In this document: positions 3,994-57,827 of the stretch, piece after piece
How positions within the stretch are numbered: the first letter of the stretch is position 1
Layout of the letters: the number at the start of each line of letters is the position of its first letter
Origin: Oopsacas minuta
Lineage: Eukaryota; Animalia; Porifera
NCBI GenBank assembly: GCA_024704765.1
Contig: JAKMXF010000010.1
Location: 1 to 57,827, forward strand
Length of the DNA stretch: 57,827 nucleotides
Direction: 5' to 3'
Notes under the pieces: model-generated
What the model saw: only the letters and a program-made list of their open reading frames with translations
Told to the model about the DNA's origin: nothing
The model's database searches: none
Translations under genes and position numbers: made by a program

Positions 3994-5757
3994 TTAAAGG
4001 GGAAATACTTCTTGAGTAACACTAGTTTTAGCATCAGCCCCCCGTCCCAGCTTAAGAGTATCAATCTCTTTACTCAACTCATCGATACGAGTACGAGCTT
4101 GTTGTTTAACACGAGGAGGAGAGAGAGTGGGAGAGGAGGAGGGATAAATGGGAGGATGATCACTCTCAATGTACTTGTGTTCCTGACTATCTGTCAAATT
4201 CACACTCTTATCCTCAGTCACAAACTGACGGTGAGTGTTCTGTGTCCCAGAGGCGAGTGCGTCATCTCTAGCCTGATCTCTCATGTCTCGTTCAGAATTT
4301 TTTTCACCCTCACAGGCCTCACTTCCACTAGAAATTTCTAATGAGTTGGAAAGAGTGAGGAACTCCTGTGTTATTAGGTGATTGATATTTTCTAACACCT
4401 CTATCCCGCAATCACTCAGGTTCCGAGAGATGTAACTAGAAAGAATGTCATTCAAATCTCTACCTAGTGTACTCTGGACACGTAACACTATTTCCTGAGG
4501 GAACAACTGTGACACCAGCAAAAGTATACCTTGATGTATCGTTTCCAGGAGTCTAGGCTTAAAACATTCATCATTGTGTTTGTACAAAAAAGCAATGATA
4601 TAATTCTCAACTTCATGAAATCGTTTGTTCCATGGAGATACATCACCCTCACTCAGATGGGAAGTGACCTCTGAGATGTCATTCTCATCTTCACCAGAAA
4701 CAGCTATGTGTATTGCCTCAAAGTCTTCAGGTTTGCCAACTAGAGGGTGGATATAGTCTACGGCTTCAGACACCTGATAAGCTTGAGAGACACTTCGCTC
4801 ATCAACGTTCTCACTTGATCCGAACAGGTTCGTGTTCGGGCAGTGTCTGAGGGGAAAATTCTTGGTGGGAGAGTACACGGTCTCTTGTCTCCTCACCACC
4901 TGCAGTCTCTCTGACACTTGTGTAGAAGGTATGAAAGATGAAGGGGTGGGGGGAAGTTGTGGAATAGCAGAGAAGCCTTGAGCATCGAGCAGATCAGGAT
5001 TTTGAAAATCTTTAATCACACGCTTCAGAGAACTCAGACCAGATTCTCTCAGATAATCAGTATTGAGTAATTGAGCTACACGAATAAGCTCCAGCATGTA
5101 GTAGGGATATGTTTCATTCTGTGTTACCAGAGAGGCTACCTCTGAGAATATTCGTTCCCTCACTTGATCCAATACAGGAGACTCAAGATCTGGGGAAACC
5201 CTCTTCTGTGAATTGTTACGAGTAACATGAGCAGATTTCCTTCTGGGGGAAGCAGGACCAGCATTAACTTGTTGTTGTGATTGTTTTCTGTAAGAGTGTA
5301 TAGGAGTGACCTCCCGTCCAGAAAGATTATCACGAGCTGAGAGCAGGCGGTGTTGAGATGATATAATTTTATCTGAGAAAGTTAGATCAGTCTGAGTACA
5401 GCTAGTAGATACAGGCACACGAGGCTCATGTATCCACTGGCTAACCGGGTGTAAAGCAGGACCAGGACCAGGACCAGGAGTAGGTAAGCTCTGGTACATA
5501 TTAGCATGAACTGAAGAGGGATAGAAACCAGGAGTAGGTGTAGGGTAGCTGAGAAGGACAGGAGGAGCTGTTTGGTAGTGAGGAGTGACTGGAAGGGAAT
5601 AAGGAGCACTAGGGAGAGTAGTACCGCGAGGAGTAGTACAGTAGTGTATAGGAAGATAGTATGTAGGATAACAGCTACACTGTTGATATAAGGGAGTAAT
5701 GGGTACAAAGATGTGAGGCTGTTCGGCTAAAATACAAATGTGTGAAAATATACACAT
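3994..5757 (-). CDS. PCM1: PCM1 C-terminal-domain protein, copy A (587-aa ORF; the first ~10 codons derive from a repeat)
   Basis: VRERIFSEVASLVTQNETYPYYMLELIRVAQLLNTDYLRESGL resembles recalled vertebrate PCM1 LRDTIYSEVATLISQNESRPHFLIELFHELQLLNTDYLRQRAL; second block FLYKHNDECF...LSDCGIEVL resembles FLKEHMDEVC...LKDCGEDLL. Confidence 0.8.
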   Translation of the reverse strand: MCIFSHICILAEQPHIFVPITPLYQQCSCYPTYYLPIHYCTTPRGTTLPSAPYSLPVTPHYQTAPPVLLSYPTPTPGFYPSSVHANMYQSLPTPGPGPGPALHPVSQWIHEPRVPVSTSCTQTDLTFSDKIISSQHRLLSARDNLSGREVTPIHSYRKQSQQQVNAGPASPRRKSAHVTRNNSQKRVSPDLESPVLDQVRERIFSEVASLVTQNETYPYYMLELIRVAQLLNTDYLRESGLSSLKRVIKDFQNPDLLDAQGFSAIPQLPPTPSSFIPSTQVSERLQVVRRQETVYSPTKNFPLRHCPNTNLFGSSENVDERSVSQAYQVSEAVDYIHPLVGKPEDFEAIHIAVSGEDENDISEVTSHLSEGDVSPWNKRFHEVENYIIAFLYKHNDECFKPRLLETIHQGILLLVSQLFPQEIVLRVQSTLGRDLNDILSSYISRNLSDCGIEVLENINHLITQEFLTLSNSLEISSGSEACEGEKNSERDMRDQARDDALASGTQNTHRQFVTEDKSVNLTDSQEHKYIESDHPPIYPSSSPTLSPPRVKQQARTRIDELSKEIDTLKLGRGADAKTSVTQEVFPL

Positions 5758-6065
5758 TAGAAAACTTTAAAATTTGGACCACTAGAGGTCACTACAAGTA
5801 CACATGCCAAATTTGGTGTCTTAACTTAGAAAGGTGTGAACAGTAGAGCGCAAACATATACGTATATATTATATATACTCAACCATTTTAGAACTGAGCC
5901 ACTATACTATGCAATAGTATTAGTCGGCATAACAAAAATAGAATATACAATTACATACTCAGAGTGCATTATTTAGATCTCAGCAGCTTGGTATTTGTTT
6001 CGCTTAGCCAACAAAAGTAACATTGCAATACCATATAAGTAAAATTGATCATTTGGGATTCTTAC

Positions 6066-6883
6066 TGAGTACTTGAATAGATACGAGCCTTGAATAGAGA
6101 TATCTATTTGCTACAACGGAATTATCATCTATAGTTTCTACGATACACTGGTACTCTAGTGCGTCTAACTCCTGGGTGTCTCTGAAGAGTAAAGTTCCTT
6201 GGTGGGGAGATACGTAACTCACTCTGTTGCTAGTCTGATGAGGAATATACGTATATACATTTTTAGCGGGGATAAAGCATTATATTCACCTGCAAAGGAT
6301 TCCATCTACGCTAGCCTGACATACCAGATAGTTATCTTGTGCTAGTGCAAAAGAGCCAGAAGAAGGCTCATGTGTGAATCTAGTACCATCTAAATGAATA
6401 AGAATTATTCTTGATTGATATTTTGGTAAACAAATGATCGATATGTTTACCAATATACATAACTATACAAATAATAATTACTTAGTATGGTGATGTAAGT
6501 ACTTTGGTGTATTAAACCTAAAGAGTTGGAAACGATACAAGTGTAATTTCCGCTATCTTCTTTAAAGAGGGAATTCTTCACAAGAATACCCGGTGAGGAG
6601 TGGAGAAATATCTGAATGAATGAAAATTAAGTTCTTATAAAACCTATCACTGATAAGATATTTCATATTTGTAATCTCGTTGTCAGACCTACCCAAACTA
6701 ATCAATAAAATACAGCTAAACAATGAAACATCAATTTACCCTTGAGTAATAGGATCATTAAGAGGAATAAAGTCTCTGTTCCAAGAGTATTAGGGGGCGG
6801 GAACTGAGTCACCTGAGCAATTGAGTGAAAGAGGAGGATAAGTGAATATAATTACAGATGTCAAGTGTTCACAACCCAGAAAT
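6066..6883 (-). pseudogene. Multi-exon immunoglobulin-superfamily (I-set-like) pseudogene
   Basis: GT-AG exons 6883-6740, 6611-6482, 6389-6325, 6234-6066 encode LSLNCSGDSVPAP*YSWNRD (in-frame TAA at 6792-6790), KEDSGNYTCIVSNSLG and GTLLFRDTQELDALEYQC. A phase clash between exons 1 and 2 implies a frameshift. Absent from the ORF track. Confidence 0.75.
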
Positions 6884-7070
6884 CTGGGAGAATAACCGAA
6901 ATGTAGTTGTGACGTAATCATAGTACGTATACGAAAGTTTAGTCGAGATATACACTTTTATCACTATCAACTTATAACTTTCCGCAAGTTCTAATCACCG
7001 AATTTATCGTTACAAAAGTATTTCCATACGAATATTCACAAAATTGATACAATTACGTATAGATTGCATA

Positions 7071-7343
7071 CCGTATTACCGCGAATAATCGCCGGGGCGA
7101 TTTTGAATTTCAAGCACCCTTCAGAGGGAAATTTAGATTTTTGGTAAGCACGATTATTCGATATAATCATATCTATGTTTATGCAATATAATATGTATAT
7201 TTATCCTTACAAACTGTAGATTGACCAAAATAAAGGGGAATAATGATTCACTGTATGTAGTGATATATTTTTAGGACCCTCAGGGGGGCGAATAATCGAG
7301 GGAGGGATTATTCAATGAGAGGCGATTATTCGAGGTAACACGG
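7071..7343. mobile_element. Tc1/mariner (pogo-like) MITE
   Basis: TIRs ccgtattaccgcgaataatcgcc / ggcgattattcgaggtaacacgg, TA on both sides. Confidence 0.85.
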
Positions 7344-8005
7344 TAATTTGATATCTAGATGGAAACCTTAGGGAAGATCGAATTACTGTCATAATATACA
7401 ACAATTTTAAGCAGAAAAATGTCCAGCCGACAGACTGGTAGTGCACCTCAGGGTCATGTATTTTTGTTTTTCAAGGGGGCAGCCCCCCTACCCCCGAGTA
7501 AATGCCACAATGCACTGGACCCGACTGATTATGGGATCCTGGATCAGATAAATATTTTTCAAATATTATAAATATAGATTTGAAAATATCAAAATTATAA
7601 TTCCCTTACTCGATTACTCCTTACTAGAAGTTGAAATGAAACCTCTAGCTGATTTTGATTAATTTGCAAAAAGCTGTGAATTGTAATTAATGTTAGATTA
7701 GAAAACATCTACAAATATATTATTAAATCTCGATTGCTGTGTGTTTGTTAGTCCGGTTAGTATTATAGTATTAGCGAAACAGAACTTAGTGAATGGGTAA
7801 TATGAGTAAAGTACACAACTAGGTGGATAGATTCCAAATTTCGCATTTCAAGATTCTCATATGCAAATGCACTGTTGTTATTATGAATATAAAGTAAATA
7901 AAATATCGGAAGAGACTTGCTTTCAGCGCCTATATAGAGGGAGCTAAGTGTGCTGTGTCATATAGTGTCAGGAGGAGAAGGTGAAACTGTATGGAAGGTA
8001 GCGGA

Positions 8006-8568
8006 CAGAAATGGAACCGGTCGGGTCGGGTACCGGTCGAAGATCTCGACCGGCCGGTCATAATTTCTGAATATGGGCAGTCTGAATTTGATCTAGTTGT
8101 GCTAAAGGAGGCAGCGTTAAACGGACTTTGGCCGTAAAATTCCGTACATATTCTATATATTCAAAATTTCTTTATTAGTCTACATTTCAATATTTCTATC
8201 TTTTCTACATTTCTGTATTAAATAGGATTTATGTGTATAATCATCCATTATATACTGCCTGGCCAAAGTATTCGAACGCCAGAGCTACAATTAGCACATA
8301 GCACCAATATAAATGCCACATTAGTTATAGACAAATTATTGAAAATTATTTCATACATTTTATAATAAATATTAATTCATCAACCTTGAAGAAAAGAGAT
8401 TTTCTACTTTCTGCAATATCCACAGAATATTCAACATATTCTCGCCGTGTGCCACTTGTGTCACAAGTGGCAGGGTGTTCCAATACTTTCGGCCAGGCAG
8501 TGCATAGTCAAAGCTACCAGTCGGCCGGTCGGGTGAGGTCATGAAAAAGCTGACCGGTTCCATCTCTG
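8006..8568. mobile_element. hAT-type MITE with a nested Tc1-like MITE
   Basis: TIRs cagaaatggaaccggtc / gaccggttccatctctg; 8-bp TSD gtagcgga at 7998-8005 and 8569-8576. Confidence 0.92.
8253..8502. mobile_element. Tc1-like MITE, same family as 26198-26444
   Basis: TIRs tactgcctggccaaagtattcgaac / gttccaatactttcggccaggcagtg. Confidence 0.85.
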
Positions 8569-8587
8569 GTAGCGGAAGAATTCAGAT

Positions 8588-9172
8588 CAGTGCTGCAAAT
8601 GGGTCAGATGGGTCACTTTTTTAAGATGGGTCAGTGGGTCATGGGGCATGCGTTAATGGGTCATGACCCATCAAAATTGTATTTATATACAATGTAGGCT
8701 TAAAAGAGTTATTTGTCAATTAGAAAACCTTCTAAATAGAGTTAATAGAGGTGGTCATTATACTAAATGTTTGGAATACTACAAGTAAGAGTTTTAATCT
8801 TCTTGATTTGTGGAAGCAGAATAACTTAAGTTTCCATTATTATCAATAATTGCCATGAGACTATTGGTAATTCAGGCATCCCCATCCGAAAGCGAGAGAC
8901 ACTTTAGTGCCTTTGATGCTCGGCATATCGTAACATCTCAATGGAATGCAATGTTGCCAGAAACTATCGAAGCTGTCTCTGTTGTGTTGGAAGATATAAA
9001 ACAACTTGATATAATTATTGTGTTAGACTAAATACTTACATTATACTTGTTCCTAATAATGAAATACATAATGGGTCAGAATGGGTCAGGAAATAATTAA
9101 TGGGTCATGGGTCACTACTTCGATGGGTCACATGGGCCATGGGTCACTTCATGTGACCCATTTGCAGCTCTG
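8588..9172 (+). mobile_element. Non-autonomous hAT deletion derivative retaining the C-terminal dimerization region
   Basis: TIRs cagtgctgcaaatgggtca / tgacccatttgcagctctg; 8-bp TSD attcagat (8580-8587, 9173-9180); remnant LVIQASPSESERHFSAF...LPETIEAV; atgggtc subterminal repeats. Confidence 0.92.
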
Positions 9173-9279
9173 ATTCAGATGCAGTAGAGGTTTCATACAA
9201 AGCTTACTATCTTCGAGTGCTGCTCGCTGCTCTTGTCTAATCAGATTCTCTGAAGAGATACAGCACTTATGGCCGCTAC

Positions 9280-12555: not shown

Positions 12556-13854
12556 CAGGGTAGGGTGTTCAATAAGTTCGTGGAAAAGTATATTTAGAGT
12601 AAGGAGTACTAAATGTTAGATTTAGCTATCCATTTATCAATCATATATTTATTGATTTGCTTAAACTTTGTGATACAAGCAGCTATATTCAGAGCAATAA
12701 TCAGATCTTTCCGCCAGTTGTTTGAAAAATAATGAATTTTGAGAACTTAGAGCATCGAGCAGTCATTAAATTTCTCTGTATAAAAGGACTAAGCGCTACT
12801 GAAGCGTTCAAAGAGATGAAAGATGTCCTCAAAGACAATGCCCCTAGTCAATCTATGGTTGCAAAATGGCATGCAGAATTCAAACGTGGAAGAAGAAGTA
12901 TTACAGATGGCCCTCGCTCAGGAAGACCCACATTTTCTCTCCATCCAGCAACAATCCAATCTATTGGTGGTATGATAGAGAACGATCACTGTATATCGAT
13001 CAGAAATATAGCTAATAGGGTAGATTTATCAATTGGAACTATTCATTTGATCATTCATGACCATCTTGGGCTCAAGAAATACAAAGCAAAGTGGATACCA
13101 AAAACCTTATCTGAAGATCAAATGATGGCTAGACTGGAAACTAGCAAAAGCATGGTTGATTTGTATATGTCTGACCCAGAAGATTCCATGCGAGACTGAT
13201 TACAGAAGATGAAACCTGGATATACTACCATGACCCTTGCACTGTTAGCGGGGCTGCGGAATGGAGGCATGAAGATTCTCCAAAGCCCATAGTACCCCGA
13301 CTTGGTCACTGTCCAAAGTCTAAGTCAAAGCTGATGCTATCAATATTCTGGGATTCTAAGGGACCATTACTATTAGATTATCTTCCAAAAATTCGACGGT
13401 GACTGGAGCATATTATGCCAATCTAATGACGAGGTTACGCGAATCTTTAAAGAGGAATAGGCGAGGAATGCTAAAATAATCCCACTCATTTTACATGGTA
13501 GTGCTCATCCCATAAAGTCACATTGCACAGGAGGCAATAAAAGATTGTGGCTTTAAACAGGTTCAACACCCACCATACAGTCCTGATGTAGCTCCCAGTG
13601 ATTATTATCTATTTCCAATTGCCAAGCAAGCACTTCGCGCAAATATTTTTGGCGATGACGATGCATTAGAATCGGGTTTTGAAGACTGGTTAGACACTAA
13701 AGACAAAATGTTATTTCATCATGGCATAGAAAAGCTGAAAGATAAGTGGCTTAGATGTATTCTATTACAAGGGGATTATGTTGAAAATTAAACTCTAGCC
13801 ATTGCTATACAAAACGTCTGTATACTAATTTCCACGAACTTATTGAACACCCTG
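12556..13854 (+). mobile_element. Mariner (DD34D) element 1, full length, transposase frameshifted
   Basis: TIR cagggtgttcaataagttcgtggaaa at both ends (left has a 5-bp duplication), TA TSD; HTH ORF 12732-13199, then EDETW, WVPK-like WIPKTL and HPPYSPDVAPSDYYLF in other frames. Confidence 0.93.
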
Positions 13855-17052: not shown

Positions 17053-17253
17053 GGGCCCAAGTTCAGTAATCTAAGATTGCCAGATACTAGTCCTTCTATT
17101 TATGGAGTCTATGCCCTGTATGTAAAATGTATTGGGTTAATTCAAAATGAAAAAATGAAAAATATTAACTCATCATCGCTAGTACTGTAGGGTAGTCCTC
17201 CTACAAACATTTTCGATCGGTCGTTTATAAATGGTCTCGATTTGTACAAACCA

Positions 17254-17532
17254 TAGAATTATCACTTAATTCATATCCAAGTTCTAAAGAAGTACATAAC
17301 ATATCTATGCAGAAATCGTTTCCACTTATGAACGGTATCTTGGGGGCCTGAAGGAATGTGAAACACTGCAACATCAGTATGATCATGCTAGTATCCAGTG
17401 GTATATTAGTGGTGTTGCTGTGTTTCACATTCCTTCAGGCCCCCAAGATACCGTTCATAAGTGGAAACGATTTCTGCATAGATATGTTATGTACTTCTTT
17501 AGAACTTGGATATGAATTAAGTGATAATTCTA
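17254..17532. repeat. Long palindrome: 113-bp perfect arms, 53-nt loop, derived from a THAP coding segment
   Basis: 17254-17366 is the exact reverse complement of 17420-17532; the right arm reads VFHIPSGPQDTVHKWKRFLHR. Confidence 0.95.
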
Positions 17533-18493: not shown

Positions 18494-18589
18494 GGAAAAA
18501 TTGTGATCGTAGAGATAGAGGCTTCTTTATAGAATTTATCAGTACATTTCGAATCAACAAGAATCTGGGTGGGGAGAGCCTACTATAAC

Positions 18590-23360: not shown

Positions 23361-23460
23361 ATCCCTATACCCAAACACTAATATACTGATTTTAATCCCT
23401 ATACCCAAACACTAATATACTGATTTTAATCCCTATACCCAAGTACTAATATACTGATTT
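23361..23460 (+). repeat. 34-bp tandem repeat x3
   Basis: atccctatacccaaacactaatatactgatttta repeated. Confidence 0.9.
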
Positions 23461-23740
23461 ATGCGTATGGAAATTCGGGAGGAGCTTCGATCGTGCTCGG
23501 AAACCTGTATATCCCCCTGATGCGAATCGTGTTAAATAGCTCGGCTAATCAGTCTGACTCCAAAATCGCGCTTAATCGAGTCAAAATGGCTTGATCCAAA
23601 AGTGAACCTACTTATTAAATTGAGTCTACTGTACATATATACATCTACACAATTGACTTGGCAAATTTTGTAAGTTTGTCCGATCTTAATTAATCATGGT
23701 AGAGATTGTTCGTATTAATTCTATGGTCCCCATGGATGTA

Positions 23741-23925
23741 CAGTCGACTCCGGTTAATCGGACCACTTGTTAATCGGACAATTCGGTTAATCGGACCATT
23801 TTCTCCTGGACGGAATCTAATCTAATCCAGGATTAATATTTAACATTTTTCGGTTAATCGGACACTCCGGATAATCGGACCACTTTACTCTGGACAAAAG
23901 TGGTCCGATTAACCGGAGTCGACTG
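23741..23925. mobile_element. pogo/Tigger-like MITE (185 bp)
   Basis: Perfect 28-bp TIR cagtcgactccggttaatcggaccactt, TA TSD, internal ggttaatcggac repeats. Confidence 0.93.
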
Positions 23926-24105
23926 TAGTCAACTAAATTAATCTCAGAATTTCATATAGAATGTTTTCGATACTATTCAGGTTGTGGCCAGGGGCGAATC
24001 ACTCGTTTTAAGACGACTACCCTTTCACCAAAAAATTACAGCAATACTCATTTGAAATATTTCTTGAATTATTTCAGCTATCATATTCAGCACTGTTAAT
24101 TAATA

Positions 24106-24302
24106 CCGTAAACTGGGGCTACTTTGGCCCAAATATCAAAGTATCAAAGCAACTAGATTAGATTCAGTATTATACTTGAATATGACTAGCCAATTTTCAA
24201 TGAATTTTCTAATATCGGTAGGCAATTTCTAGTACAAGTACAATATCTATTCGATACGTAAGCTAATTTCAATATTTGGGCTAAAGTAGCCCCAGTTTAG
24301 AG
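24106..24302. mobile_element. Tc1/mariner-type MITE
   Basis: TIRs ccgtaaactggggctactttggccc / gggctaaagtagccccagtttagag, TA TSD. Confidence 0.85.
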
Positions 24303-24619
24303 TAATCAATTTCTTGGATTACATAAATCTATTATTAGACATGTATTTTAGTGTAAATTAATTATTGCTTTGTTACCACTGTTTTGTCCATTACTATTCT
24401 GTTGTAAGAAATGCTGCAGTTTACTCAATTAATTTGATATTCTTTCTATATTTATTTAATTCACATTTAATAATTTTATTATTTTTCAAATGTTCGCGTA
24501 TGGAATATTCTGCTTGAATTCCGTGAATATTCATAAACAGCCTAACACATTAATATAATATAATAACATATGATGTGAGGCGCACTAAATTCCGAAACAA
24601 ACAAACAATCATTTACTTA

Positions 24620-25308
24620 AGGCCATGTAAAATACATTACTTGTTTCTCATCCATTTTTATCTGGGGAATAGGGGCGGGGGGGCGGCATTTTATTTTTAT
24701 TTTTTGCTTAGCGTCATTTTACTAATTTATTTAAACTATCTCGTTAATACGAATTTCTGATTAGACTAACAATGATGGTACATAATCAGGTCCCTACAAT
24801 CGTACTTCAAAGGATATTATTCCGGTTTATGAACTCTGGAAAGGTGATTAAATTTTATCCATACCGACGGTCCGTTGGTGTTCGTATTCAACTTACACTG
24901 TATATGGGAAACTAATATTCACTTCCTCTCTATAATCTGTATTATTGTACAATTTAAATAATAATAATAATAATTTAGTGCACACTCCGGGGCTGATTTT
25001 TTCCATACAGGGAGGGATATTTGGGTCTGACTCGGACAGGTTTGATTCTTAGACGAAAGTTCACACCTGACGAAATTATGATGCCATTGCCACCTTTTTG
25101 GATTTCCAAAAATCACATGATTAGCCACACTGCTCAGCGACCTAGCAAGCGAAGGGCGCTAGTGTTAAATACTTGGCTTGTTGCGAAGATGCTCATCTGC
25201 GATTATAAGTATTAAATAAAGATATGTAATAAAATAATAAATTGCCGAGGAGGGAGATTAAATGGGGCGGGCGGGGATGTTAGACAAGTATATTATTTTA
25301 TATGGCCT
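24620..25308 (+). mobile_element. Full-length aggccatgtaaaa MITE (about 690 bp)
   Basis: TIRs aggccatgtaaaat / attttatatggcct flanked by TA. Confidence 0.8.
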
Positions 25309-26009
25309 TACCTGGAAATTGTTTGTTTGTTTGTTTGTTTGTTTGATTCAAAATTATATGAATTTTATCTTACTAATTACCAAAAATTATTTTAATTATG
25401 ATTGGACTTTAGTAAATCAGTTTAGTTAATTCAACCTAAGCTTTTGGTAATTATAATTCCATTAATATTACGTCATACTTATTTAATTCTTATTTAATTA
25501 TTTTGATGAGTAATAATTACTTTTGACACTTTGACTCGAATTGACTTATAACAATCAGATTCTAAATATTCCAAATTTTGGCAATCAAATACGTACGAAT
25601 AAACATTTACCAAACAAACAAACAAATATACACTATTCAATATATTCAAAATCTAGCTGTGAAACACGTACGAACAAGTGACCGACGAATATACATACAA
25701 AAAACATGTGAACAAACCTATGTATATATGATTATATATATATTTGGCTTAAAAAATAGTGTTGTGACGTCATATACGAATAATATATTTCAGGCCTTAC
25801 ATTAATTACTATAACATTTATTAATAAACATTCAGGGACACAGGGTTAAGTTAATAGCACCCCACAGGATCAATTGAATGTCTCATAGTGACTATTAGTA
25901 AGTTGAGAATTTTCTGTGTGATCTCCCTTGAGTGATTATTGCAGGAATAATTGAATTGTACTAAGCAACATTATTTTGAGGAAAAACTTGATTGACCAAT
26001 TCATCTATA

Positions 26010-26590
26010 TTATTGAATATCAATTGTTGTCTGTTGTTTGTTTGTTTGTCCTTTGATATGTAAATATATTGTTGTTTTATGAATATGAAGGTAAACAAAT
26101 TAGCAAGATCCAAAATTTACGTAGATACTTGCTCTCAACGGCTACGAAGGGGGTTGATATTACAAAATAATTCAATATTATATATGCCATATACGTACAC
26201 TGCCTGGCCAAAAGTATTGGAACACTGTTTACAACTTGTGCACAAGTGGCATTAGATGAGAATATGTTGAAAGATTCTATGGATATTGCAGAAAGTAGAA
26301 CAATAGCTTGTTATCATTCGTTTTACGATATATTTATGTTCAACATATTTTGTAATCATCTTTAGCTTATACAACTATGGTGGCATACCTTTGTTTCAGG
26401 TATTAATTGTGGCAGGGTGTCCCAATACTTTTGGCCAGGCAGTGTATATTTGTGAATTACATTGTTCTAAATATATTTATATTATAATACTCAATGAGAC
26501 CGTCAATTTGGAGAATAATGGATACCTCGAGGGGCAATGCGACGAGTTCATCGGGAAGCGACGAGCCAAAGGCTCGTGTACGAATTAAAA
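26010..26590 (+). mobile_element. Helitron/Helentron-like repeat copy carrying a nested Tc1 MITE
   Basis: Family sequence; the uninterrupted site atacgtatatttgtg is present in the copy at about 46985. Confidence 0.55.
26198..26444. mobile_element. Tc1-like MITE
   Basis: TIRs cactgcctggccaaaagtattggaacac / gtgtcccaatacttttggccaggcagtg; TA TSD supported by the empty-site paralog. Confidence 0.92.
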
Positions 26591-26933
26591 TGGATTGGTT
26601 TGTATGGGAGAGGTGATAAAAAATGACAGATCTTTTGATGCACTAATCCGATCTCTTAAATAATTCGACAAACAAAATACAAACTATTAATGCTTATACT
26701 TGTAACTATTTATATGTGTTTATGTTTCTTTTTAGACGAAGAAGCTATTCGTAGGTGGAATTTCATCTGACACGAGTGAAGATGAAGTATACTATTATTT
26801 CAAAGATTTTGGGAATGTAAGTAATAATCTGTTTAGTTTTATGACGTAATCTATTATACACATCTTCTAATATATCAACGAATTTGGAAATTAATATCCT
26901 CAAGACGAAAATATGCATCGTGTAACTCTAGTA

Positions 26934-27093
26934 TAGTGTAACTTCCACAAACGCCTGTAGTAACGGGGAACTTCTGGATATGGAGTGAGAAAATATACTG
27001 AATTCCTATTCCTATAGTTAGTAATGAATCTCCACAAACGAATCTCCAAATTTTTCGGCGTATCTGCCTCCCCCTTTTATGGAAGTTACACTG
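26934..27093. mobile_element. Tc1/mariner-type MITE (160 bp)
   Basis: TIRs tagtgtaacttcca / tggaagttacactg, TA TSD. Confidence 0.8.
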
Positions 27094-27576
27094 TATATCT
27101 ATTCCCGAATGGTCAGTCAGTTGGTATTTTCTTGCCCCGATTATTTAAATGTTGAGTTCTATTTTTATCAGTTTATCCCTCATTTTCATGGAATGACATT
27201 AAAGGAATGACCTATTTCGATGGTTTACGAATTTCATACCCCCATCTACTGAAAATATTTATTATTAATTTGATTATATTACACAGATAGTAGAGGCTAT
27301 GCTTATCTTCGACAAGTCAACGAACAAGCACAAAGGTATGTCACACTCAATGTATATTTATGTATGTATTCACCACGATAGCTGCTAACCAATGACAGTA
27401 GTATACTCGGATAAGAAGTATATTCGCTTGATATTTAATTCTTCTTTTAAACAACAATCACTTTCTGTACATTTTGATACTTTCACTATTCGGATTAGAC
27501 GTACGCTTAGATAGTGTGTATTCGTATTATCCGAGTTCTAGTGTATCCGATAATTATAGAATTGCTAGCAGATTAT

Positions 27577-27669
27577 CAGAGGCGGCGCGAGGGTGAGGCT
27601 CGTGCCCACCTAATTTATGTAAGTATGACACCGTTTAATAACCCGAGCCCACCAGTAGCGCCGCCACTG
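27577..27669. mobile_element. hAT-type MITE (93 bp) in a Musashi intron
   Basis: TIRs cagaggcggcgc / gcgccgccactg; direct repeat gcagattat at 27568-27576 and 27670-27678. Confidence 0.85.
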
Positions 27670-28795
27670 GCAGATTATATAACAAAATTTGTTAACCAAA
27701 AATCCATATTTCGAATAATGATACCTCAGGGAAATAACTCTACATTCTACAAAATCACAAAATGATTTTTACAATCAAGTAACACATAACCATATATGGT
27801 AATGTTTCACTTCTGGCATTTCTAGGATTTGGATTTGTGACGTATGACAAGTATGACACAGTAGATGAGATTTGTTATCAACAGTTTCACTTCATTAATG
27901 GCAAGAAGGTTAGTTTGTTTACATTTACTTATAGTCAATTCCTGTTCAATCGAACAAGCAAAAATTGAATACCCGCTTATATTGAAGTGTTGATTTGTAC
28001 AAATATGACTCAAACCGTAAATGTAACATAGATTACTTCGGTTATATCTAAGTAATTATCGCGGTCCCATGAGCTTCGATATAATGGGAGTTGACTGTAT
28101 ATGTCTGTTTGTATATTATACGTTACGCAAGTAATTTCATTACTCACTATAAATATCATTTTCATAACGCTGAATAGATAAGATGAGCTATTCTAAGTTT
28201 AAAATTATTAAATTACATATCAAACCGGTTAGACAGCAATTATAATCTATAATTACTGAATTAGTAAAACGTTCAATTTGACATTATTGTTATTGATATT
28301 GTGTTAATATTGTGTATACATTTATGAAATATATTTAGCGCGATAGCTTTGTTAGACTGTCTTTCATCACAACAACTTCGTTAATTTCTCCAAATCTCGA
28401 ACGGTGAATTCATCTAAATATATCAAAGAATAAATATATTACCTGTATTAGAATATATTCAGAAAATTACAATATTAATTATGTAATTTTTCCATAAGTT
28501 GACAGTTAGAGCTTTGATATTCTTAGAAAGTGATTTCTCGTAGTGGTAACCAGGCTATTCCTGGAAGTAATTTGTTGAGAAGGGGTTTTGGGATACAAAT
28601 TTGTATTAGCTTCTAAGGGAATTAACAAGCGGTTTATAATTAGATAGCTCTAAATCAGGGGGTGCCCAACTCGTTATAATTGTGGGCCACATTGGCTTCC
28701 TCAATAGCTTGGTGGGTCATATGGACCAATTTATAAATCTCAGATGTATTTTGAGAAAATTTGTTGGAATATCCAAATTTATACCCCTCGATATA

Positions 28796-29087
28796 AACAT
28801 TAGTCTCATTACTTATTAAACAACCCTTGTAGATGTAGAGATTGTTAAGATGATGAAAGATAAGATGAGTTAAAAGCCAAGGCTCCTCCAAAGGGTACTG
28901 ATGCTCCAGACATGTCCTATACAGAGAAATTGGCAATATTGCGTTAGGTGTATTCGTTTTGGGGGTATCAGCATGTACTGGGAATTCTAAATTAATGTCA
29001 GATTATTTGCGTCCAGCTCCTCAAACTCCGAGGAAAATTGGTGATGAAGAATTCAAAGAATACATCGAGCACTCCAATAATGATTAA
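28796..29087 (+). pseudogene. Mariner-3 TIR followed by a frameshifted C-terminal part of the AIG1/GIMAP-like gene
   Basis: cattagtctcattacttattaaacaacccttg|ta is identical to the junction at 57290-57324; what follows is homologous to 52020-52282 with a 4-bp deletion. Confidence 0.8.
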
Positions 29088-29126
29088 TTGTTTTTATCTT
29101 TGTAAATTTACTTTTATTAGATTTTT

Positions 29127-30851
29127 TTGCCAAATATGTACACCCCTACATACTACCCTCCTGTACACTACTGTACAACTCCTCACTGTATTACTCCACA
29201 ACCATTCCCTCTCTTCTGTCACTCCCTCCCTATTGCTCCTTACCACCAGACAGCTCCTCCTCCTCCTCCTGTCCCTCTCAGCTACCCTACGCCTACTCCT
29301 TACCACCAGACAGCTCCTCCTCCTCCTGTCCCTCTCAGCTACCCTTCACCTACTCCTTACCACCAGACAGCTCCTCATCCTCCTCCTGTCCCTCTCAGCT
29401 ACCCTACTCCTACTCCTTACCACCAGACAGCTCCTCATCCTCCTCCTGTCCCTCTCAGCTACCCTACACCTACTCCTTACCACCAGACAGCTCCTCCTGC
29501 TCCTCCTGTCCCTCTCAGCTACCCTACACCTACTCCTTACCACCAGACAGCTCCTCATCCTCCTCCTGTCCCTCTCAGCTACCCTACTCCTACTCCTTAC
29601 CACCAGACAGCTCCTCATCCTCCTCCTGTCCCTCTCAGCTACCCTACACCTACTCCTCCTGCCTTCTATCCCTCTTCAGTTCATTGTAATATGTACCAGA
29701 GCTTACCTATTCCTTGTCCTTGTCCTGGTCCTGGTCCTGGTCCTGGCCCTGCTATACACCCGGTTAACCAGTGGATACAGCAGCCTTATGTGCCTAAGAC
29801 TGCTAGCTGTACTCAGACTGATCTGACTTTCTCAGATAATCCTCTATCCTCTCAACACCGTCTGTCCTCAGCTCGTGACAATCCTTCCAGACGGGAGCTT
29901 TCTCCTATACCGTCTTACAGACAGCAGCAACAAGAAGATAATGTAGAGGTAGACTGCTCCTTGTTGCTACCTGCTGCTCCTGGAAGGAGATCTGCTCCTT
30001 TTACTAGTACCAATTCACAGAAGAGGTTTTCCCCAGGTCTTGAGTCTCCTTCATTCGATCAAGTGAGGGAAGAGATATACTCAGAGGTAGCCTCTCTGAT
30101 ATCAGAGAATGAAACACGTCTCTACCACATGCTGAAGTTTCTTCGTGCAGTTCGATCACTCAACACTGATTATCTGGTACAATGTGGTCTAAGTTCTCTG
30201 AATCATGTGATCAATAATTTTCAGAATCCTGATGTGATCGACTTTGAGGCATTACGAACAGCTATTTCTGATGAAGATGACATCTCAGAGGTCACTGCCT
30301 ATCCAAGTGAGGGTGACTTTGAGGAGGGTGTTGTGTCTGCCTGGCAACAACAAGTATATACCCTTGTAAGTCTTCTGATTCGTTTCTTGCGAAAGCATCT
30401 GGATGAATGTTGTGAGGCCGAACTGCTGCAATTGATTTATCGACATATAGAGGATCTGCTGTCAGAATTGTTCCCTGAGGAGATAGCGTTACGTCTCTGG
30501 AGAGTAGTAGATCTAGATGTGCAGGCTATTCTTTCTCGTTACGCGACTGAGAAGCTGAGGGATTGTATAGAAGACTTGTTGGTAGAATTGAGTGGCCTAT
30601 TCTCCTTACAGGATGTTATGTACATCGCTCTCTCTAACTCCTTGCAGCAACAACAACAACAACAACAACAACAACAACTTTCTTATGAGAGTGAGGATGG
30701 AGAAGGTTGTGAACGAGACATAAGAGATCAGGCTAGAGATGACGCACTCGCCTCTGTCACACAGAACACCCCCCCTCAGGTTGCGACTGAGGCTGAGAAT
30801 GTGACAGATAAGTCGTCAAAAAGTATCGCGATCGTGATCGAGCGATCCTAA
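29127..30851 (+). CDS. PCM1: PCM1 C-terminal-domain protein, copy B (574 aa) with Pro-rich repeats and polyQ
   Basis: VREEIYSEVASLISENETRLYHMLKFLRAVRSLNTDYL and FLRKHLDECC..KLRDCIEDLLVELSGL resemble recalled PCM1 C-terminal blocks; paralog of 3994-5757. Confidence 0.82.
   Translation: MPNMYTPTYYPPVHYCTTPHCITPQPFPLFCHSLPIAPYHQTAPPPPPVPLSYPTPTPYHQTAPPPPVPLSYPSPTPYHQTAPHPPPVPLSYPTPTPYHQTAPHPPPVPLSYPTPTPYHQTAPPAPPVPLSYPTPTPYHQTAPHPPPVPLSYPTPTPYHQTAPHPPPVPLSYPTPTPPAFYPSSVHCNMYQSLPIPCPCPGPGPGPGPAIHPVNQWIQQPYVPKTASCTQTDLTFSDNPLSSQHRLSSARDNPSRRELSPIPSYRQQQQEDNVEVDCSLLLPAAPGRRSAPFTSTNSQKRFSPGLESPSFDQVREEIYSEVASLISENETRLYHMLKFLRAVRSLNTDYLVQCGLSSLNHVINNFQNPDVIDFEALRTAISDEDDISEVTAYPSEGDFEEGVVSAWQQQVYTLVSLLIRFLRKHLDECCEAELLQLIYRHIEDLLSELFPEEIALRLWRVVDLDVQAILSRYATEKLRDCIEDLLVELSGLFSLQDVMYIALSNSLQQQQQQQQQQQLSYESEDGEGCERDIRDQARDDALASVTQNTPPQVATEAENVTDKSSKSIAIVIERS
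29230..29660 (+). repeat. In-frame 60-bp coding tandem repeat (about 7 x PYHQTAPHPPPVPLSYPTPT)
   Basis: Seen directly; copy A has a single unit. Confidence 0.93.
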
Positions 30852-44715: not shown

Positions 44716-45362
44716 TTGTTTGTTATTCTGTTTATGATTAGTCTCATCTACAGACTGTATTTATACAAATTGCACGTGAATAGAAGTTACAACTAATCCA
44801 ATTCCTTGAACTCTACCACGAGACTATTGTCTCACAGAATTACGGATGTGTTAGGGTTAGGTCAGATAGCTTTCAATGTGTATATTAGTTCCAGTTATAA
44901 CTACCCACATTCCTTGTATAGAATTAGTTGCTATGCTATATCAGCTATCAGTTTCAATTTGTTATTCTAATCATTTCTTGTATTTTCCTCCTTCAAATTT
45001 TGTCGGGAAAAATATGACAATATAGAGTTTCTTATATCATCGGTCAATAAGCCTTCTGAAGCTAATCTCAAATAACATTTCACTTTCGCCACTCTTATAT
45101 TCATCAGAAACTTGTTTCAGTTCCGCATTTAATACACCTGAACATGCATTTTGTCTGGCGGTTCTTTATCATTATCTCATCATTTTGTGAATTGGAAAAT
45201 TGGTTCATTGATTTCATTCACAGAAATATTATAACTGCTAAACTCAAGTTTTGCTATGAGAATTAGTTTTGAGTATGAATAATACTTCCATTGTATTCTA
45301 ACCAGTTTATACAACTTGTAGTTGAAATACATTGAGTAAATGGTGAAATATTGACAATAATG

Positions 45363-47125: not shown

Positions 47126-48481
47126 GTATTGTATATTCTATAGAATAGCATTATGGTTATATTATACATAGATTAATATATAATTATAATATACCCATAA
47201 CATTATACACAGAATCAGATATAAGTAGTAGATTAGTTATTTCGTATTTGCTTTACAAACTTTTACTACAAATCTTCATAAAAAACTTACAGGTAAGTTG
47301 GCTTCTATGCCTTGGTGTCTACCCAGCACCTTATTATACAGAAATGAGATTAATTATTGCTTGTTTTCTTTATAAGATATAATTCCTACAAGAAGTGTGT
47401 TTGGATTTACCATAACCATCTTATTGTCATCGTTCTATAACACGCCTTTTTGAATGGCTACCGCTTCCCCATTATGTTTACATAACACCATTCCCTTAGT
47501 AGCATCGTAATTATCACATTTCTACAGGCCTACGAAGACAAATGTTCTGAATTAGCTAGCTATGTACTGGAAATTTCTGAATCTAGAGAGGCTCATTCAA
47601 AGAAATACGGTGTAATTATAGCAGTTGATGGTTACGTCACTTACATCTGAATAAAATGGGCTGAAGTTATGTTTATTCTTTAGATCACATGTGGGTAAAG
47701 TGCGGACCGCATGAGGCCCAAATAAATTTTCTGACACTCTTAACCATCATTGACTTGAGATGAGTATTGCATAGAACAATTCGTTAATGATTATTGTATT
47801 AATTATGATTAATCATATTTTGATAATGTAAATATTGCAGGGCTGTAGGAAGCAAAGAACATTAGTTTGGTGAAAAGTAAACGGAGCGAGCAAACAAAAG
47901 TGAGGTTCTGTGTGGTCTTTCCCTCTAGGGATTTTGACCCTTTCACACACTTAGTCGGAGGTTTAGATGCTGTTTTATGTATTGTAAACACATTCTATTA
48001 GAACATTTGTGTTATGAAATTAGTGAATATACATATATTTTGGAGGTTTACTATTCTACATCTTATCTCCAATGTCACACCTTAGAGCACCTGCTCCTAC
48101 GGCCCTGTATTGTATAACGAATGAAAATATATAAAATCTCGAATTTGTCTCAGTAAATTTCCATAATTTTGACAACAAAATTTCAAGGAAGAAAATACAA
48201 GAAATGATTAGAATAACAAATAGACACTGATAGCTAATATAGCATAGCAACTAACTCTATACAAGGAATGTGAGTAGTTATAACTGGAGCTAATTTACAT
48301 ATTGTAAGCTATCTGACTTAACACATCCATAATTCTGAGACAATAGTCTCGTGGTAAAGTTCAAGGAAATGGGATTTGTTGCAACTTTCTATTTCACCAC
48401 TTGACACCTGAATAATTAACCTACAAACTTGTATAAATACAGTCTGTAAATGAGACAAATCATAAACAGAACAACAAACAA

Positions 48482-49630
48482 ATGGCAACTAAATACCCAG
48501 ATGAAATTCCTACCAATCATTTCGAACTAGCGGAGCAGCTGAACTATTCCACGTTAGAGAACATAATTCGATTGCGACAGAGAGGAGAGATCAGCTGTTC
48601 GATATCAAACATTCCTATCTGAACAAGGAGATGACAAGAAAGAAACAAGTATCAGACCTGGAGAAGCTAATCCAACAATTAATAGAAACTAGCATTCAGC
48701 AGAACCGAGTAGTAAAGTTTCAAGAAAACAGATGAGGCAAACAAGAGCTGAAATACAGAAACACGAAAATGAACCACCTATCCCAATCCCTTGCCTCAAT
48801 ACTGAGGGTCTAGACTCTCTACTAGAACAGCTGGAGAAGTTGGGGTCTATTCAGGATATAGCTGTACCATACAGAAACAAGACAAAGCCCATTAGAAAGA
48901 TTGGGGGTAAGGGCAGTAAGAAAGGGGAGCTGGATATTCCTCGTGGACTAGCTCTAGATGGAGATAAGATCTATATAGCAGATGCAAAGAATAATAGAAT
49001 ACAGATCTTCTCTACAGAGGGTAAGTTCATTCATGAATTTGGTCAGAGGAAACTAGTTTATCCATATGGTATAGCATTACATAACGAATGGGTGTTTATA
49101 AGTAATTTGGGACTTCAAGCTGTATTTAAATTCTCTAAAACAAATTACAAATTAATTAAGAGTGTTAAGGAAGGTGTTAGTGTCTCTCTTGGTCTAACAA
49201 CTGACACAAATGGAGAAGTGTTAGTTGCAGATTCTGGTAATATAATTGCAGTATTCAGCTCTGATTTAGAATATATTAGAGAAATAGGAATGGCAAACTC
49301 ATAAACACGAGTGACGTCAAAATAAATAATAATAAGATATTTGTTGCAGACAATAATGAGATAAATAATATTTACGTATTCTCTAAATCAGGTGATTTAT
49401 TGAAAAGTTTCATAAAATTCGAAAATGGAGGAAGAGAAATTTTTCTGTGTTTTGATTTGTATAATAATATTATAATTAGCTATAATTGGGGAAATTCAAT
49501 TAATATATTTACTAAAGATGGACAGCTGATACACAAAATTAAATGTAATAATCCTACAGGAATAGTTGTTAATAATAACTTTGATATTATTTGTGCTAGT
49601 CATGATGATAATGTAATAAATATATATTAA
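48482..49630 (+). pseudogene. Frameshifted NHL-repeat paralog (inverted duplicate of 43651-44715)
   Basis: ATG at 48482 MATKYPDEIPTNHFELAEQL is identical to copy 1; frameshifts near 48570, 48725 and 49300; retains the full C-terminus ..HDDNVINIY*. Confidence 0.9.
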
Positions 49631-51616: not shown

Positions 51617-51962
51617 ATAATATGTATATAATCAAAAAATATATTTTATGAATCTTTAATAGCATTTCCTCCAGCATACATTGTAGTGTTGTCACAAATT
51701 ATGTCATATTATTTTATATTAATTATTGATATTCCCTTTCATTTCTAGGTGCTAGCAACTCAAATACTTTTCCAAAGGATGATGAAAAATTACAATGTTG
51801 ATAACAATAATAATATAATAATAATAATGAATGCACTGCAACATATTTATTATGTTTAATTTCGTATTTAGTAAAGAACCAGAAGAGAACTTTTTATTAT
51901 GGCACGGCCATACACCAGTGTGCACACGTGCACACCAAGCACGTCCATACTGCAACATATAC

Positions 51963-52282
51963 ACAAGATTCTAGAAATATCACAAATTATCAAGCAGAAT
52001 AATGAAGGGAGAGAATACATAGATGTAGAGATAGTTAAGAAAATGGAAGATAAGATAAGTAAGTTAAAAGCCAAGCCTCTTCCAACGGGTGCTGATGCTC
52101 CAGGCATGTCCTATACAGAAATATTGGGAAATATTGTATTAGGTGTATTCATTTTCGGGGTATCAGTATCTAGGGGAAATTCAAAATTATTGACGGATTA
52201 TTTACATCCAGTTCCTCAACCTCCGAGGAAAATTGATGATGAAGAGTTCCAAGTATTTACCGAACACTTCAAAAATGATTAA
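51963..52282 (+). pseudogene. C-terminal fragment of the AIG1/GIMAP-like gene, without the mariner insertion
   Basis: 57 of 58 bp identical to 55946-56003, then an open frame EYIDVEIVKK..ILGNIVLGVFIFGVSVS..FKND*. Confidence 0.7.
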
Positions 52283-55293: not shown

Positions 55294-56004
55294 TTGAATA
55301 CTGACACTTTGAATACAAAACTAATGGAAATCATGACTCGAAAAAGTTGGAAGCAATTATCCGAGCTTCTACAGCGAGTTAATAACAGATATATGTTCGT
55401 AAATGCAATGAACAGAGAACCTGGTTATCGTGAAGAGATTCTACAGAAACTGTTTGAACTTTCTAAACCTGTTGTGAAGGCTACATTCCATGGAAGTACA
55501 GGCTTTACATGTGAAGACTTACAGACACTATTCAAAGATAACAGCTGTGATATATCACATCCCAAATGTCACCTACAGTGTACTTTTTGTGATTTTCAAT
55601 GCACACAGGACAATCCTAATTTGGAATCATTTATCTCTAGAGTAAGACAATTAACACACGGTATTTCTGTGATTGTACTCCAAATAAATCTTAATAATGA
55701 TCTGAGCGAGCAGTCATTGAGGTTAATAACTGGATTGCCTGAATGTTATAAGCTAGGAGGAGATGGAGAGAGTGAATTTTGGAAATACACATTTATCTTG
55801 TTTAAGTTTGAAGCAGAACAGGAGGATCCAATTGGGTATATTCATAAACAATGTGAGAGATACGGGTGTATCAGAGAATTATATGAGAAATCTGGAAAGA
55901 GAGCTACATGGGTGACTGAACACATGACACGAGATCAATGTATTAACAAGATTCTAGAAATATCACAAATTATCAAGCAGAATAATGAAGGGAGAAAATA
56001 CATG
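55294..56004 (+). pseudogene. AIG1/GIMAP-like gene, N-terminal part, interrupted by mariner 3
   Basis: HGISVIVLQINL..SEQ, FWKYTFILF, IRELYEKSGKR, KILEISQIIKQNNEGRKY resemble the post-G3 part of the AIG1 domain; no GxxxxGKS or DTPG. The apparent tail MQELFNK* is mariner TIR sequence. Confidence 0.6.
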
Positions 56005-57322
56005 CAAGAGTTGTTCAATAAATAATAAGACATTCTTTCATAATTCATACAGTAAACCTATACTTATCATAATTGATTATCAAATGTTTCGATACATTCC
56101 CCCTTTAACTTTATACATCGTTTCCATCGTTCTGGTAACTTTTCCAGCCCAGTGGTATAGAATTCTTTAGGGGTTCCTTTTTCCCACTGTTTATTTCGTA
56201 CTCTAGCCATTTGAATCCTCAAATCTCTTCCCTCGAAGAGGTCACTTCAGCTCTCCAAACAGCCAGTAGTAGCTGGGAGCCAGGTCTGGACTATACGGGG
56301 GATGAGGGAGGTATTCGAATCCTAAGTCGTCAATTGCAGCCATTGTCTTGGAGCTTACATGGGGGCCTTGCGTTGTCATGTTGCAACAATACGCCACGTG
56401 TCCACTTGCCTCGCCTCTCACGTTTAATCGCTTGACGCAATTCTTTCAATTTGTCAACATAATAATCACTGTTTATTGTTGTCTTCTTAGGCAACCAGTC
56501 GAGGTGTATAATTCCTTCCCTATCCCAAAATACTGTTGCCATTCTCTTCCCCTGCTGCTGATTGTGCGGCCTTTACCTTGATGGGTACAGGTTCATCACG
56601 TCTCTTCCACTGCTTCGATTGAGTTTTGCTCTCTGGTTCATAATAATGAAACCAAGTTTCATCTCCCGTTACTATACGATCCAAAAAGTCTTCCCCTGCT
56701 TTGTATCTTGAAAGTAATTCTTTGCTAACTCTGACCCTTTCGCGTTATTGTCCCACTGAAGGAAGTTTTGGGACCCAACGCGCAGTTACCTACGACATTT
56801 CCAGATTTTCAGTGATAATCGAGTGTAGTGTGGCTTTTGACATACCTACCCTCTCTTCTAAATCTTGCAGGGTTATTCGTCTGTCCTTGTCCAAAATTGT
56901 TTGGACCCTCTCGATATTACTGCGGGTTTTTGAGGAAGTCGGACGACCTGGACGAGGGTCATCGTGGAGGTCCTCATCGCCATTATCAAAACGTTCGATC
57001 CATCTATATATGGTGGCTATCGAAGGACATTCATCACCGACAATATCCCGCATTTCACGAAGAATGTTTGAGCCAGTCTTGCCCTTTTCCACAGGTACCA
57101 AATTATCTGTCGTTTTCCTTCTTTGCTAAGTCCATTAGTTGAAAAAAGTAGCGGATACAAATGAAACTTTATACTGAAGAATATGCTAGTAGAGTAAATA
57201 GCATATTGTGTATCGAAGTTAGACAATCAAGTTAGGCGTGTAATCTGTTATTAGGCTTAGAGCTGTATTAACTAGAATATGAATTCGATACATTAGTCTC
57301 ATTACTTATTAAACAACCCTTG
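56005..57322 (-). mobile_element. Mariner (DD34D) element 3, full length (1318 bp), degenerate
   Basis: TIRs caagagttgttcaataaataataagac / gtctcattacttattaaacaacccttg (23 of 27); TSD TG/TA; DDPRPGRP, WVPK, TGDETW, HDNARP, PPYSPDL across stops and frameshifts. Confidence 0.92.
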
Positions 57323-57827
57323 TAGATGTAGAGATTGTTAAGAAGATGAAAGATAAGATAAGTTAAAAGCCAAGGCTCCTCCAAAGGGTGATACAATGTG
57401 GTCTGAGTTCTCTCAATCGTGTGATCAATAATTATCAGAATCCTGATGTGATCGACTTCTCTGCTATCTCATCACCTCCACCTGCTTCTTTCCTACCTTG
57501 TGCACAGATGTCAGAGAGACAGCAGCAGGTGAAGGAGAGAAAAGAGGCCGTCTACTCTCCCATCCAGAATTTTCCCATCGACGGACACTATTACCTGAAC
57601 ACGAGCCTGTCCGACTCAAGTGAAAAAGTTGATAAGCGAAGTTTCCCTCGAGCTTATCAGCTGTCTGAAGCAGTAGACCAGCATTACTCACTGGGTGACA
57701 AACCTCACGACTTTGAGGCATTACGAATAGCTGTTTCTGATGAAGATAACATCTCAGAGGTCACTTCCTATCCAAGTGAGGGTGACTTTGAGGAGGGTGT
57801 TGTGTCTGCCTGGAAACAACAAGTAAG
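57323..57827 (+). pseudogene. PCM1: GIMAP-like C-terminal stub fused by deletion to PCM1_C copy C (runs off the right edge)
   Basis: 57323-57390 matches 28830-28897; from about 57394 an open frame QCGLSSLNRVINNYQNPDVID..DFEALRIAVSDEDNISEVTSYPSEGD matches copies A and B. Confidence 0.8.

Follow-up and report, generated by a model that had tools for sequence, protein, structure and literature searches.

PCM1/Combover scaffolds the centriolar satellites, and its orthologs are reported throughout those opisthokonts in which centrioles and cilia are retained (Pachinger et al. 2025, PMC12094185). In the glass sponge Oopsacas minuta we analysed a stretch of 57,827 nucleotides (contig JAKMXF010000010.1, positions 1 to 57,827; hereafter the window), in which an earlier note, made by a model from the sequence letters, had reported three stand-alone PCM1 C-terminal-domain proteins, here called copies A, B and C. 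These copies resemble PCM1/Combover by their conserved C-terminal region, which falls within Pfam family PF15717 (PCM1_C), and they derive from the sponge ortholog, according to both their sequence and the synteny of the parent locus. They differ from it in being present in many copies, in lacking the N-terminal third and the native tail, and in being mostly broken; the ratio of non-synonymous to synonymous substitution rates (dN/dS) is ~0.9 in the copies, compared to 0.15-0.26 in full-length orthologs. The most probable account, to which we give a probability of about 0.6, is that A, B and C belong to a family which originated in the Oopsacas lineage by partial duplication of the PCM1 ortholog of this sponge, and in which constraint was relaxed, most copies died and the frames of the founders stayed open.

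The published genome of O. minuta (Hexactinellida) comprises 365 scaffolds and ~61 Mb, with a guanine plus cytosine (GC) content of 36% and a BUSCO score of 91-93% (PMC10280926). The animal has flagellated chambers and larval multiciliated cells, and metazoan core genes are already known to be missing from it, among them those for CEP63 and CEP152, which act in centriole duplication; PCM1 is not mentioned in that description (PMC10280926).

Homologs of the copies were found in ENA assemblies: P0003 (841 amino acids, aa), P0004 (1027 aa), P0008 and P0009 (1061 aa each) and P0010 (1097 aa). Each of them is encoded by one uninterrupted open reading frame (ORF), and the contig around it is eukaryotic and carries ordinary host genes. 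Their alignment (A1) gives a common layout: first a conserved region of ~315 aa at the N-terminus, then a Pro/Tyr-rich middle followed by blocks 1 and 2, both conserved and separated by a linker, and finally an acidic patch, a Ser/Pro motif and a C-terminal tail that is also conserved. Copy A and a further open copy located on contig C41 (C41a, 653 open codons) are colinear with these orthologs from the Pro/Tyr-rich middle to the Ser/Pro motif that precedes the tail, with 42-49% identity; copy A aligns to residues 337-873 of P0004. P0004 and P0008-P0010 also have in common with O. minuta a conserved tRNA-synthetase neighbour, and differ from the copies in being long single ORFs with the N-terminal region and the native tail, under purifying selection. 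The N-terminal truncation proposed in the earlier note is therefore borne out, the copies lacking the N-terminal region of full-length orthologs in other species. The same note had taken the Pro/Tyr-rich head for a replacement of the long coiled coils; this head is in fact the native middle of the full-length protein.

The assignment to PCM1 was checked with the PF15717 hidden Markov model and holds: copies A and B score 69.4 and 66.9 bits respectively, for a gathering score of 27.4. In a six-frame scan of the genome the cut-off was also passed by C41a and by eight other loci. The model is matched only at positions ~7-60 and 218-374 of its 628 positions (~200 positions), and the full-length sponge orthologs behave likewise. 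From N- to C-terminus copy A consists of a Pro/Tyr-rich head, block 1, linker, block 2, acidic patch and a short non-native tail (Table 1). This tail of ~37 codons is 98% identical in amino acids to that of C41a and is also found in solo fragments elsewhere in the genome; DNA homology of copy A to a native-tail fragment on C41 ends at ~4106. An AlphaFold2 model of A, obtained with an alignment of 9 sequences, is of low confidence (mean predicted local distance difference test score 40), and its predicted helices are limited to residues 194-252 (block 1), residues 375-472 (block 2) and two short segments. The remainder of A, for which no secondary structure is predicted and the model confidence is very low, is probably disordered. 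A search of solved structures by sequence returned nothing related to copy A.

Copies A and B are indeed long uninterrupted ORFs, of 587 and 574 codons, and are paralogous, with two matching blocks (61% identical over 231 aa at E 1e-73, 44% identical over 197 aa). Their neighbours, described earlier as broken genes, turned out to be intron-containing eukaryotic genes and transposon remnants. The 571-aa sequence read from the first ATG of copy B is identical to the database protein P0002, present in NCBI and UniRef. Relative to its twin C41a, copy B has lost in frame a linker of ~82 aa and differs in the last 14 residues; the Pro/Tyr-rich unit repeated in its head is present ~4 times in C41a and 1-2 times in A. 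As for copy C, it is open from 57367 to the window edge, as first noticed. It is nonetheless not a third gene: the segment 57394-57822 matches residues 238-379 of A, and the copy begins at the equivalent of A residue 238, in the middle of block 1 and immediately after a GIMAP/AIG1-like tail piece, which marks it as a fragment without its 5' part. We infer that copy C is a dead fragment.

The distribution of the family in the whole assembly (61,460,524 bases, 365 contigs; the window itself has ~36% GC and few long ORFs) was obtained with four queries, namely copy A, Pfam PF15717, the ortholog P0004 and a five-species profile, and all four converged on one set of loci. This set comprises at least 14 PCM1-derived loci on 11 contigs, so that the expansion first seen as three copies extends far beyond the window. 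A six-frame scan of the 61-Mb assembly with PCM1_C gave no match outside these loci. Only A, B and C41a are intact; at least 10 other loci carry stops, frameshifts, truncations or large deletions. In a maximum-likelihood tree the O. minuta copies tested (13 out of 13) form a single clade with a support of 100/100, which is split into an A-type and a B-type group. Four A-type copies (C302, C363, C55a and C332a) have in common one deletion of ~650 bp (4012-4656 in window coordinates) which removes block 2, and C246 carries four stops at ~87% identity. Several members lie at contig ends or breaks: at the end of C361, C16 and C97, at the start of C113, and on C246, a contig of 1.8 kb. These repeats probably break the assembly, and both copy number and structure are thus lower bounds.

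Two members of the family are annotated in GenBank as "Pericentriolar material 1 protein isoform X2": KAI6646087.1 (P0001, on C363) and KAI6659529.1 (P0005, on C55). Both are A-type models, 68-73% identical to A. Unlike A, their loci carry the block-2 deletion and frameshifts, and the models splice around these defects and join unrelated downstream coiled-coil exons. We also observed solo copies of the 3' tail of A on five other contigs, between unrelated genes. They consist of its last ~60 codons followed by 150-460 bp of downstream DNA (3534-4176 in the window), with 88-94% identity, and their 5' ends recur at ~4168-4176.

The missing N-terminal region was searched for at several levels. Around the copies, tblastn with two orthologs at a permissive threshold detected none of it in the window, be it within 8 kb upstream of A or upstream of B. 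In the whole assembly, a one-protein search and a five-species profile (positions 1-314) found none at E<=1. Word searches of protein databases at two length ranges returned proteins with this region from other species only, and none from O. minuta. At the other extremity, the native C-terminal tail is joined to the PCM1_C blocks in no tested copy: A and C41a have one non-native tail, B has another, and the native tail survives only as three detached pieces (Table 1). In other ENA assemblies, the N-terminal region of sponge-type PCM1 was also observed as separate ORFs of 200-500 aa without PCM1_C (P0011-P0016), three of them on contigs of 10,421 bp. Partial duplication of sponge-type PCM1 may be common in this group.

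The locus of P0004 is colinear with C361:123253-137234, including a tRNA-synthetase gene at 78% identity, and the same synthetase gene, of class I (1c), also neighbours P0009 in its own species. This shared neighbourhood designates C361:138610-141288 (L034 7322-10000) as the positional PCM1 ortholog of O. minuta, locally inverted. The copy found there is cut by the contig end at block 1. Two deletions, both in frame, have removed its linker and the core of its block 2; it also carries an early stop, and the last tail exon lies ~2 kb away. Since several family members are located at the ends of contigs and the assembly contains stretches of N, the N-terminal region is to be described as not found in this assembly, rather than as proven absent. 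Loss of the canonical PCM1 would fit the pattern of gene loss in O. minuta and would be mildly surprising; it is read from an assembly interrupted precisely where the parental locus lies.

We then considered how the copies had spread. The A-type copies share the duplicon given in Table 1, including 1.9 kb of non-coding DNA upstream of the ORF, and are 92-97% identical among themselves over rearranged multi-kb stretches. Copies B and C41a share at least 5.7 kb of co-duplicated upstream non-coding flank, and B is the only long ORF inside the corresponding duplication, the size of which is a lower bound since its left limit is that of the compared stretch. Coding DNA is conserved no better than the flanks: between A and C363, identity per bin is 88-96% in the coding part and 90-98% upstream, and between B and C41a it is 97-99% in both. 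As flanks were duplicated together with the ORFs, the copies arose by segmental duplication at the DNA level and not by retroposition. An origin as processed retrocopies was rejected on the basis of this upstream non-coding homology, which extends over 1.9 kb in one subfamily and more than 5.7 kb in the other; the search did not include poly-A tails or target-site duplications. Some boundaries of the duplicated pieces recur, at 3906, ~7661 and ~4170, which bears on a possible carriage of these sequences as transposon cargo; the extents of the duplicated pieces vary, rearrangements are common and the orthologs belong to the ordinary gene complement of their hosts (no search for terminal repeats was made).

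Substitution rates clearly separate the copies from the orthologs. Over the same region, dN/dS is 0.97 for A-B, 0.85 for A-C41a (bootstrap interval 0.66-1.15) and 0.72 for B-C41a, compared to 0.15 (0.11-0.20) for P0003-P0004 and 0.26 (0.20-0.32) for P0008-P0009. The conserved blocks follow the same tendency: in block 1, A-C41a shows a dN of 0.21 and a dN/dS of 1.46, for a dN of 0.007-0.028 between orthologs, and in block 2 dN/dS is 0.82 versus 0.07-0.20. On the branch leading to A alone, polarised by the other copies, 31 non-synonymous and 8 synonymous changes were counted (dN/dS ~1.2). Columns invariant in the five orthologs are retained at 68% in A, 71% in B and 70% in C41a, and A and C41a are 64% identical at these columns versus 62% elsewhere. 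No constraint on the amino-acid sequence is detectable since the family arose.

The reading frames were retained all the same. A and C41a show 409 differences in 1674 aligned bases, and all 23 indel events between them are in frame. About 15 stops would be expected and none is seen (Poisson P ~3e-7); the expectation is an analytic count in which 3.7% of random substitutions create a stop, as calculated from the codons of A and the observed share of transitions. Such a rate is realistic, since 4 stops arose among the 86 changes on the stem of the four A-type copies with the deletion, and C246 carries four. The frames thus remained open through the drift or diversification of the sequence. The bulk of the divergence between A and C41a lies on two deep stems, which indicates that both founder lineages stayed protein-coding after the truncating duplication. 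The hint of selection given in the earlier note is consequently retained in part: the preservation of the frames is real, but most members are broken and dN/dS is near 1, a value which the earlier note, coupling it with an absence of transcripts, had named as refuting its proposal.

These results can be arranged in the following scenario. The ancestral gene would have been a single ORF of ~1050 aa, as seen in other species, and only its portion from the middle to block 2 would have been copied, by segmental duplication of DNA, into duplication-prone, transposon-rich regions containing TRAF, GIMAP and NHL genes. The A-type and B-type subfamilies would have then arisen, each giving several recent copies, most of which now contain stops, frameshifts or deletions. 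Amino-acid constraint would have collapsed after the duplications, from a dN/dS of ~0.15-0.26 to ~0.85-1.0, with the frames of the two founder lineages remaining open. Homology, copy number, truncation, mode of duplication, substitution rates and frame retention are matters of observation. Judging from their sequence, A, B and also C41a may be, or may recently have been, translated into truncated and mostly disordered proteins of ~570-650 aa, in which two small helical PCM1_C modules are retained. The N-terminal coiled-coil region of PCM1 drives self-assembly. Lacking it, the truncated proteins would be unable to scaffold satellites as canonical PCM1 does, and they could at most bind proteins that interact with the C-terminal domain, or compete for them. 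The family is one of decaying or fast-evolving duplicates, rather than a demonstrated new set of cilia regulators of the kind suggested at first.

Several observations weigh against this account. A candidate splice acceptor is located 30 bp within the ORF of A, ending at 5727, and A may accordingly not be a stand-alone single-exon gene. The assembly breaks at family members and contains stretches of N, in which a full-length gene could be hidden. Over the last ~3% of divergence only 2-3 stops are expected, so that the intactness of each individual copy is weakly significant (P ~0.1 each, an estimate), and the current translation of A and B is a prediction from their open frames. Lastly, a neutral-like dN/dS sits uncomfortably beside strict retention of the frame, and identical averages would result if positive and negative selection were mixed.

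A first rival is a functional, neo-functionalised family, with members that are selected and diversifying, perhaps as binders or competitors of PCM1_C partners, and maybe tied to the innate-immunity-like clusters (TRAF, GIMAP, NHL) in which they lie. We regard this as unlikely. In its favour, the frames of A and C41a were kept open through ~400 substitutions and 23 indels; NCBI carries copy B as a stand-alone protein; and between the reconstructed A-type and B-type ancestors dN/dS reaches 1.15 (residues 1-364), and 3.3 in block 1, both from small counts. Independently, a second species has open N-terminally truncated paralogs (P0007 and its inverted twin) which start within ~35 residues of the same point. 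But dN/dS is significantly above 1 in no partition, and the even spread of substitutions over formerly invariant and variable positions is a signature of relaxation and not of site-specific adaptation. Most copies are dead, with coding DNA no better preserved than its flanks, and co-location with immune-type genes may merely reflect duplication-prone DNA.

Like the O. minuta copies, P0007 and its twin are truncated at the N-terminus near the same point, have kept the head and the PCM1_C blocks, are open and have a raised dN/dS (0.54 versus the full-length copy). They differ by their independent origin, as the tree places them beside P0004 and outside the O. minuta clade, and by their block 1, which is still conserved (dN/dS 0.11). 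They come from the sample that also yielded P0004 (ENA sample ERZ26869290), in which the two near-identical, inverted, truncated PCM1_C ORFs measure 480 and 440 aa (L045 6001-7443 on the plus strand and 7952-9274 on the minus strand) and start at P0004 residue 312. It is a speculative and rather doubtful idea that glass sponges have repeatedly made N-terminally truncated PCM1-derived proteins, kept open by selection while diversifying quickly, which in O. minuta, an animal with cilia, may have replaced the full-length scaffold altogether.

We consider it improbable that the whole family, A and B included, by now consists of dead pseudogenes whose open frames are left over from recently functional founder genes. 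The dN/dS of A's own branch agrees with such a state, as do the value of 0.72 for B-C41a with a coding identity equal to that of the flank, the recent branch of A, which could have escaped its 2-3 expected stops by chance, and the proportion of intact copies (1/7 for A-type, 2/6 for B-type), which fits random survival. However, the frames stayed open along the deep stems of both subfamilies, hence a coding function persisted after the truncating duplication, and three intact long ORFs are jointly less likely to occur by chance.

That A simply represents the large last exon of a regular, full-length PCM1 gene, or that an intact canonical gene is hidden by assembly gaps with the copies as side products, is very improbable: the acceptor just inside the ORF of A, the copies at contig ends, the stretches of N and the C361 locus, which leaves its contig exactly inside the gene, would allow it, but N-terminal homology is absent within 8 kb upstream of A and from the assembly, no O. 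minuta protein with this region came out of the database word searches, the DNA upstream of A is occupied by immunoglobulin-like remnants and transposon pieces, and A is not at the syntenic position, where the copy itself lacks most of block 2. The terminal-exon alternative, already named in the earlier note, was rejected, with no N-terminal exons upstream of A and the syntenic locus on another contig, C361.

Returning to partial duplication with relaxed constraint, its consequences depend on the fate of the parent gene. If the canonical PCM1 is truly gone and nothing but truncated, fast-evolving copies is left, O. minuta would constitute a natural test of the PCM1 C-terminal domain without the scaffold part. 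If the family is decaying debris, the lesson concerns annotation, the GenBank "PCM1 isoform X2" models being stitched from broken copies.

Table 1. Location of the PCM1-derived copies, their parts and surrounding features (window coordinates unless a contig or locus is named; C10 bears the copies A, B and C).
Feature	Location	Strand	Description
Copy A	3994..5757	minus	587-codon uninterrupted ORF, 587 aa; sole intact A-type member
Copy A, conserved block 1	5014..5172	minus	PCM1_C model positions 7-59; three predicted helices
Copy A, conserved block 2	4174..4605	minus	PCM1_C model positions 225-374; four predicted helices
Copy A, last ~37 codons	3994..4106	minus	Unrelated to native PCM1 tail
A-type duplicon	3906..7661	minus	88-92% identity with copies on C302, C363, C55, C332
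Immunoglobulin-like exon remnants	6052..6957	minus	Directly upstream of A, within duplicon; read from sequence motifs only
Coiled-coil-like open segment	3557..3865	minus	Directly downstream of A; ~90% shared with C41a locus
Copy B	29127..30851	plus	574-codon uninterrupted ORF; first ATG 29136, giving 571 aa; B-type
Copy B, head repeat	29236..29657	plus	7.1 tandem copies of a 60-bp (20-aa) Pro/Tyr-rich unit
Copy B, conserved block 1	30054..30218	plus	PCM1_C positions 7-61
Copy B, conserved block 2	30348..30707	plus	PCM1_C positions 218-340
Segmental duplication with B	23433..30803	plus	At least 7.4 kb, 97% identical to C41:60001-67465
GIMAP/AIG1-like gene tail fragment	28830..29094	plus	Ends ~40 bp before B; same fragment precedes C
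Copy C	57367..57827	plus	B-type fragment, 153 open codons to window edge, without 5' part
TNP/THAP9-like transposase ORF	14907-16133	minus	Pfam TNP-like RNase H and GTP-binding insertion domains
Transposase-like ORF, 553 aa	31660-33321	minus	Directly downstream of B; no Pfam match at E<=0.01
Helix-turn-helix pieces	12732-13199, 56790-57101		Mariner-like as read by eye
PCM1-derived loci	C10 (three), C41, C302, C363, C55 (two), C332 (two), C16, C246, C320, C361		
A-type clade	A, C16, C302, C363, C55a, C332a, C320		C246 is A-type by identity
B-type clade	B, C41a, C, C332b, C55b, C361		
Detached native-tail pieces	C41, C113, C361		C41 and C113 pieces each carry a stop; C361 piece open
Solo copies of A's 3' tail	C1, C55, C97, C111, C302		~5 copies
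Solo tail positions	L048 4218-4543; L049 4329-4632; L050 4630-5094; L051 3805-4392; L052 1672-2002 and 4264-4589		

The surroundings of the copies are rich in transposon remnants and in multi-copy TRAF, NHL and AIG1 genes. The ORF directly downstream of B suggests, by its N-terminal Cys/His pattern and overall look, a relative of hAT/ZBED-type transposases. A duplicate pair of 3.8 kb with 95.8% identity (15909-19693 and 33731-37501) adjoins the TNP/THAP9-like ORF. Upstream of A, the open segments of 6052-6957 are exon-like, lie on the same strand as A and display Cys/Tyr-x-Cys strand motifs. On its other side, A is adjoined by a TRAF-type zinc-finger gene (1767-2522, minus strand), which has an 89-92% identical duplicate at C10:62239-63255 (L013 7239-8255), just past the window edge and near copy C; TRAF and PCM1-like pieces are duplicated close together, with differing relative orientation. 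Further along the window, an NHL-repeat ORF is accompanied by an inverted duplicate of 86% identity (43666-45024 and 48154-49513), and several AIG1/GIMAP-like pieces are found at 51899-52282 and 55294-56025. The window is a patchwork of multi-copy, immune-type genes. It also contains a long tandem array (38873-39743), with self-match offsets of ~45-90 bp and their multiples, which overlaps a 278-aa ORF (38916-39752) that has no Pfam match.

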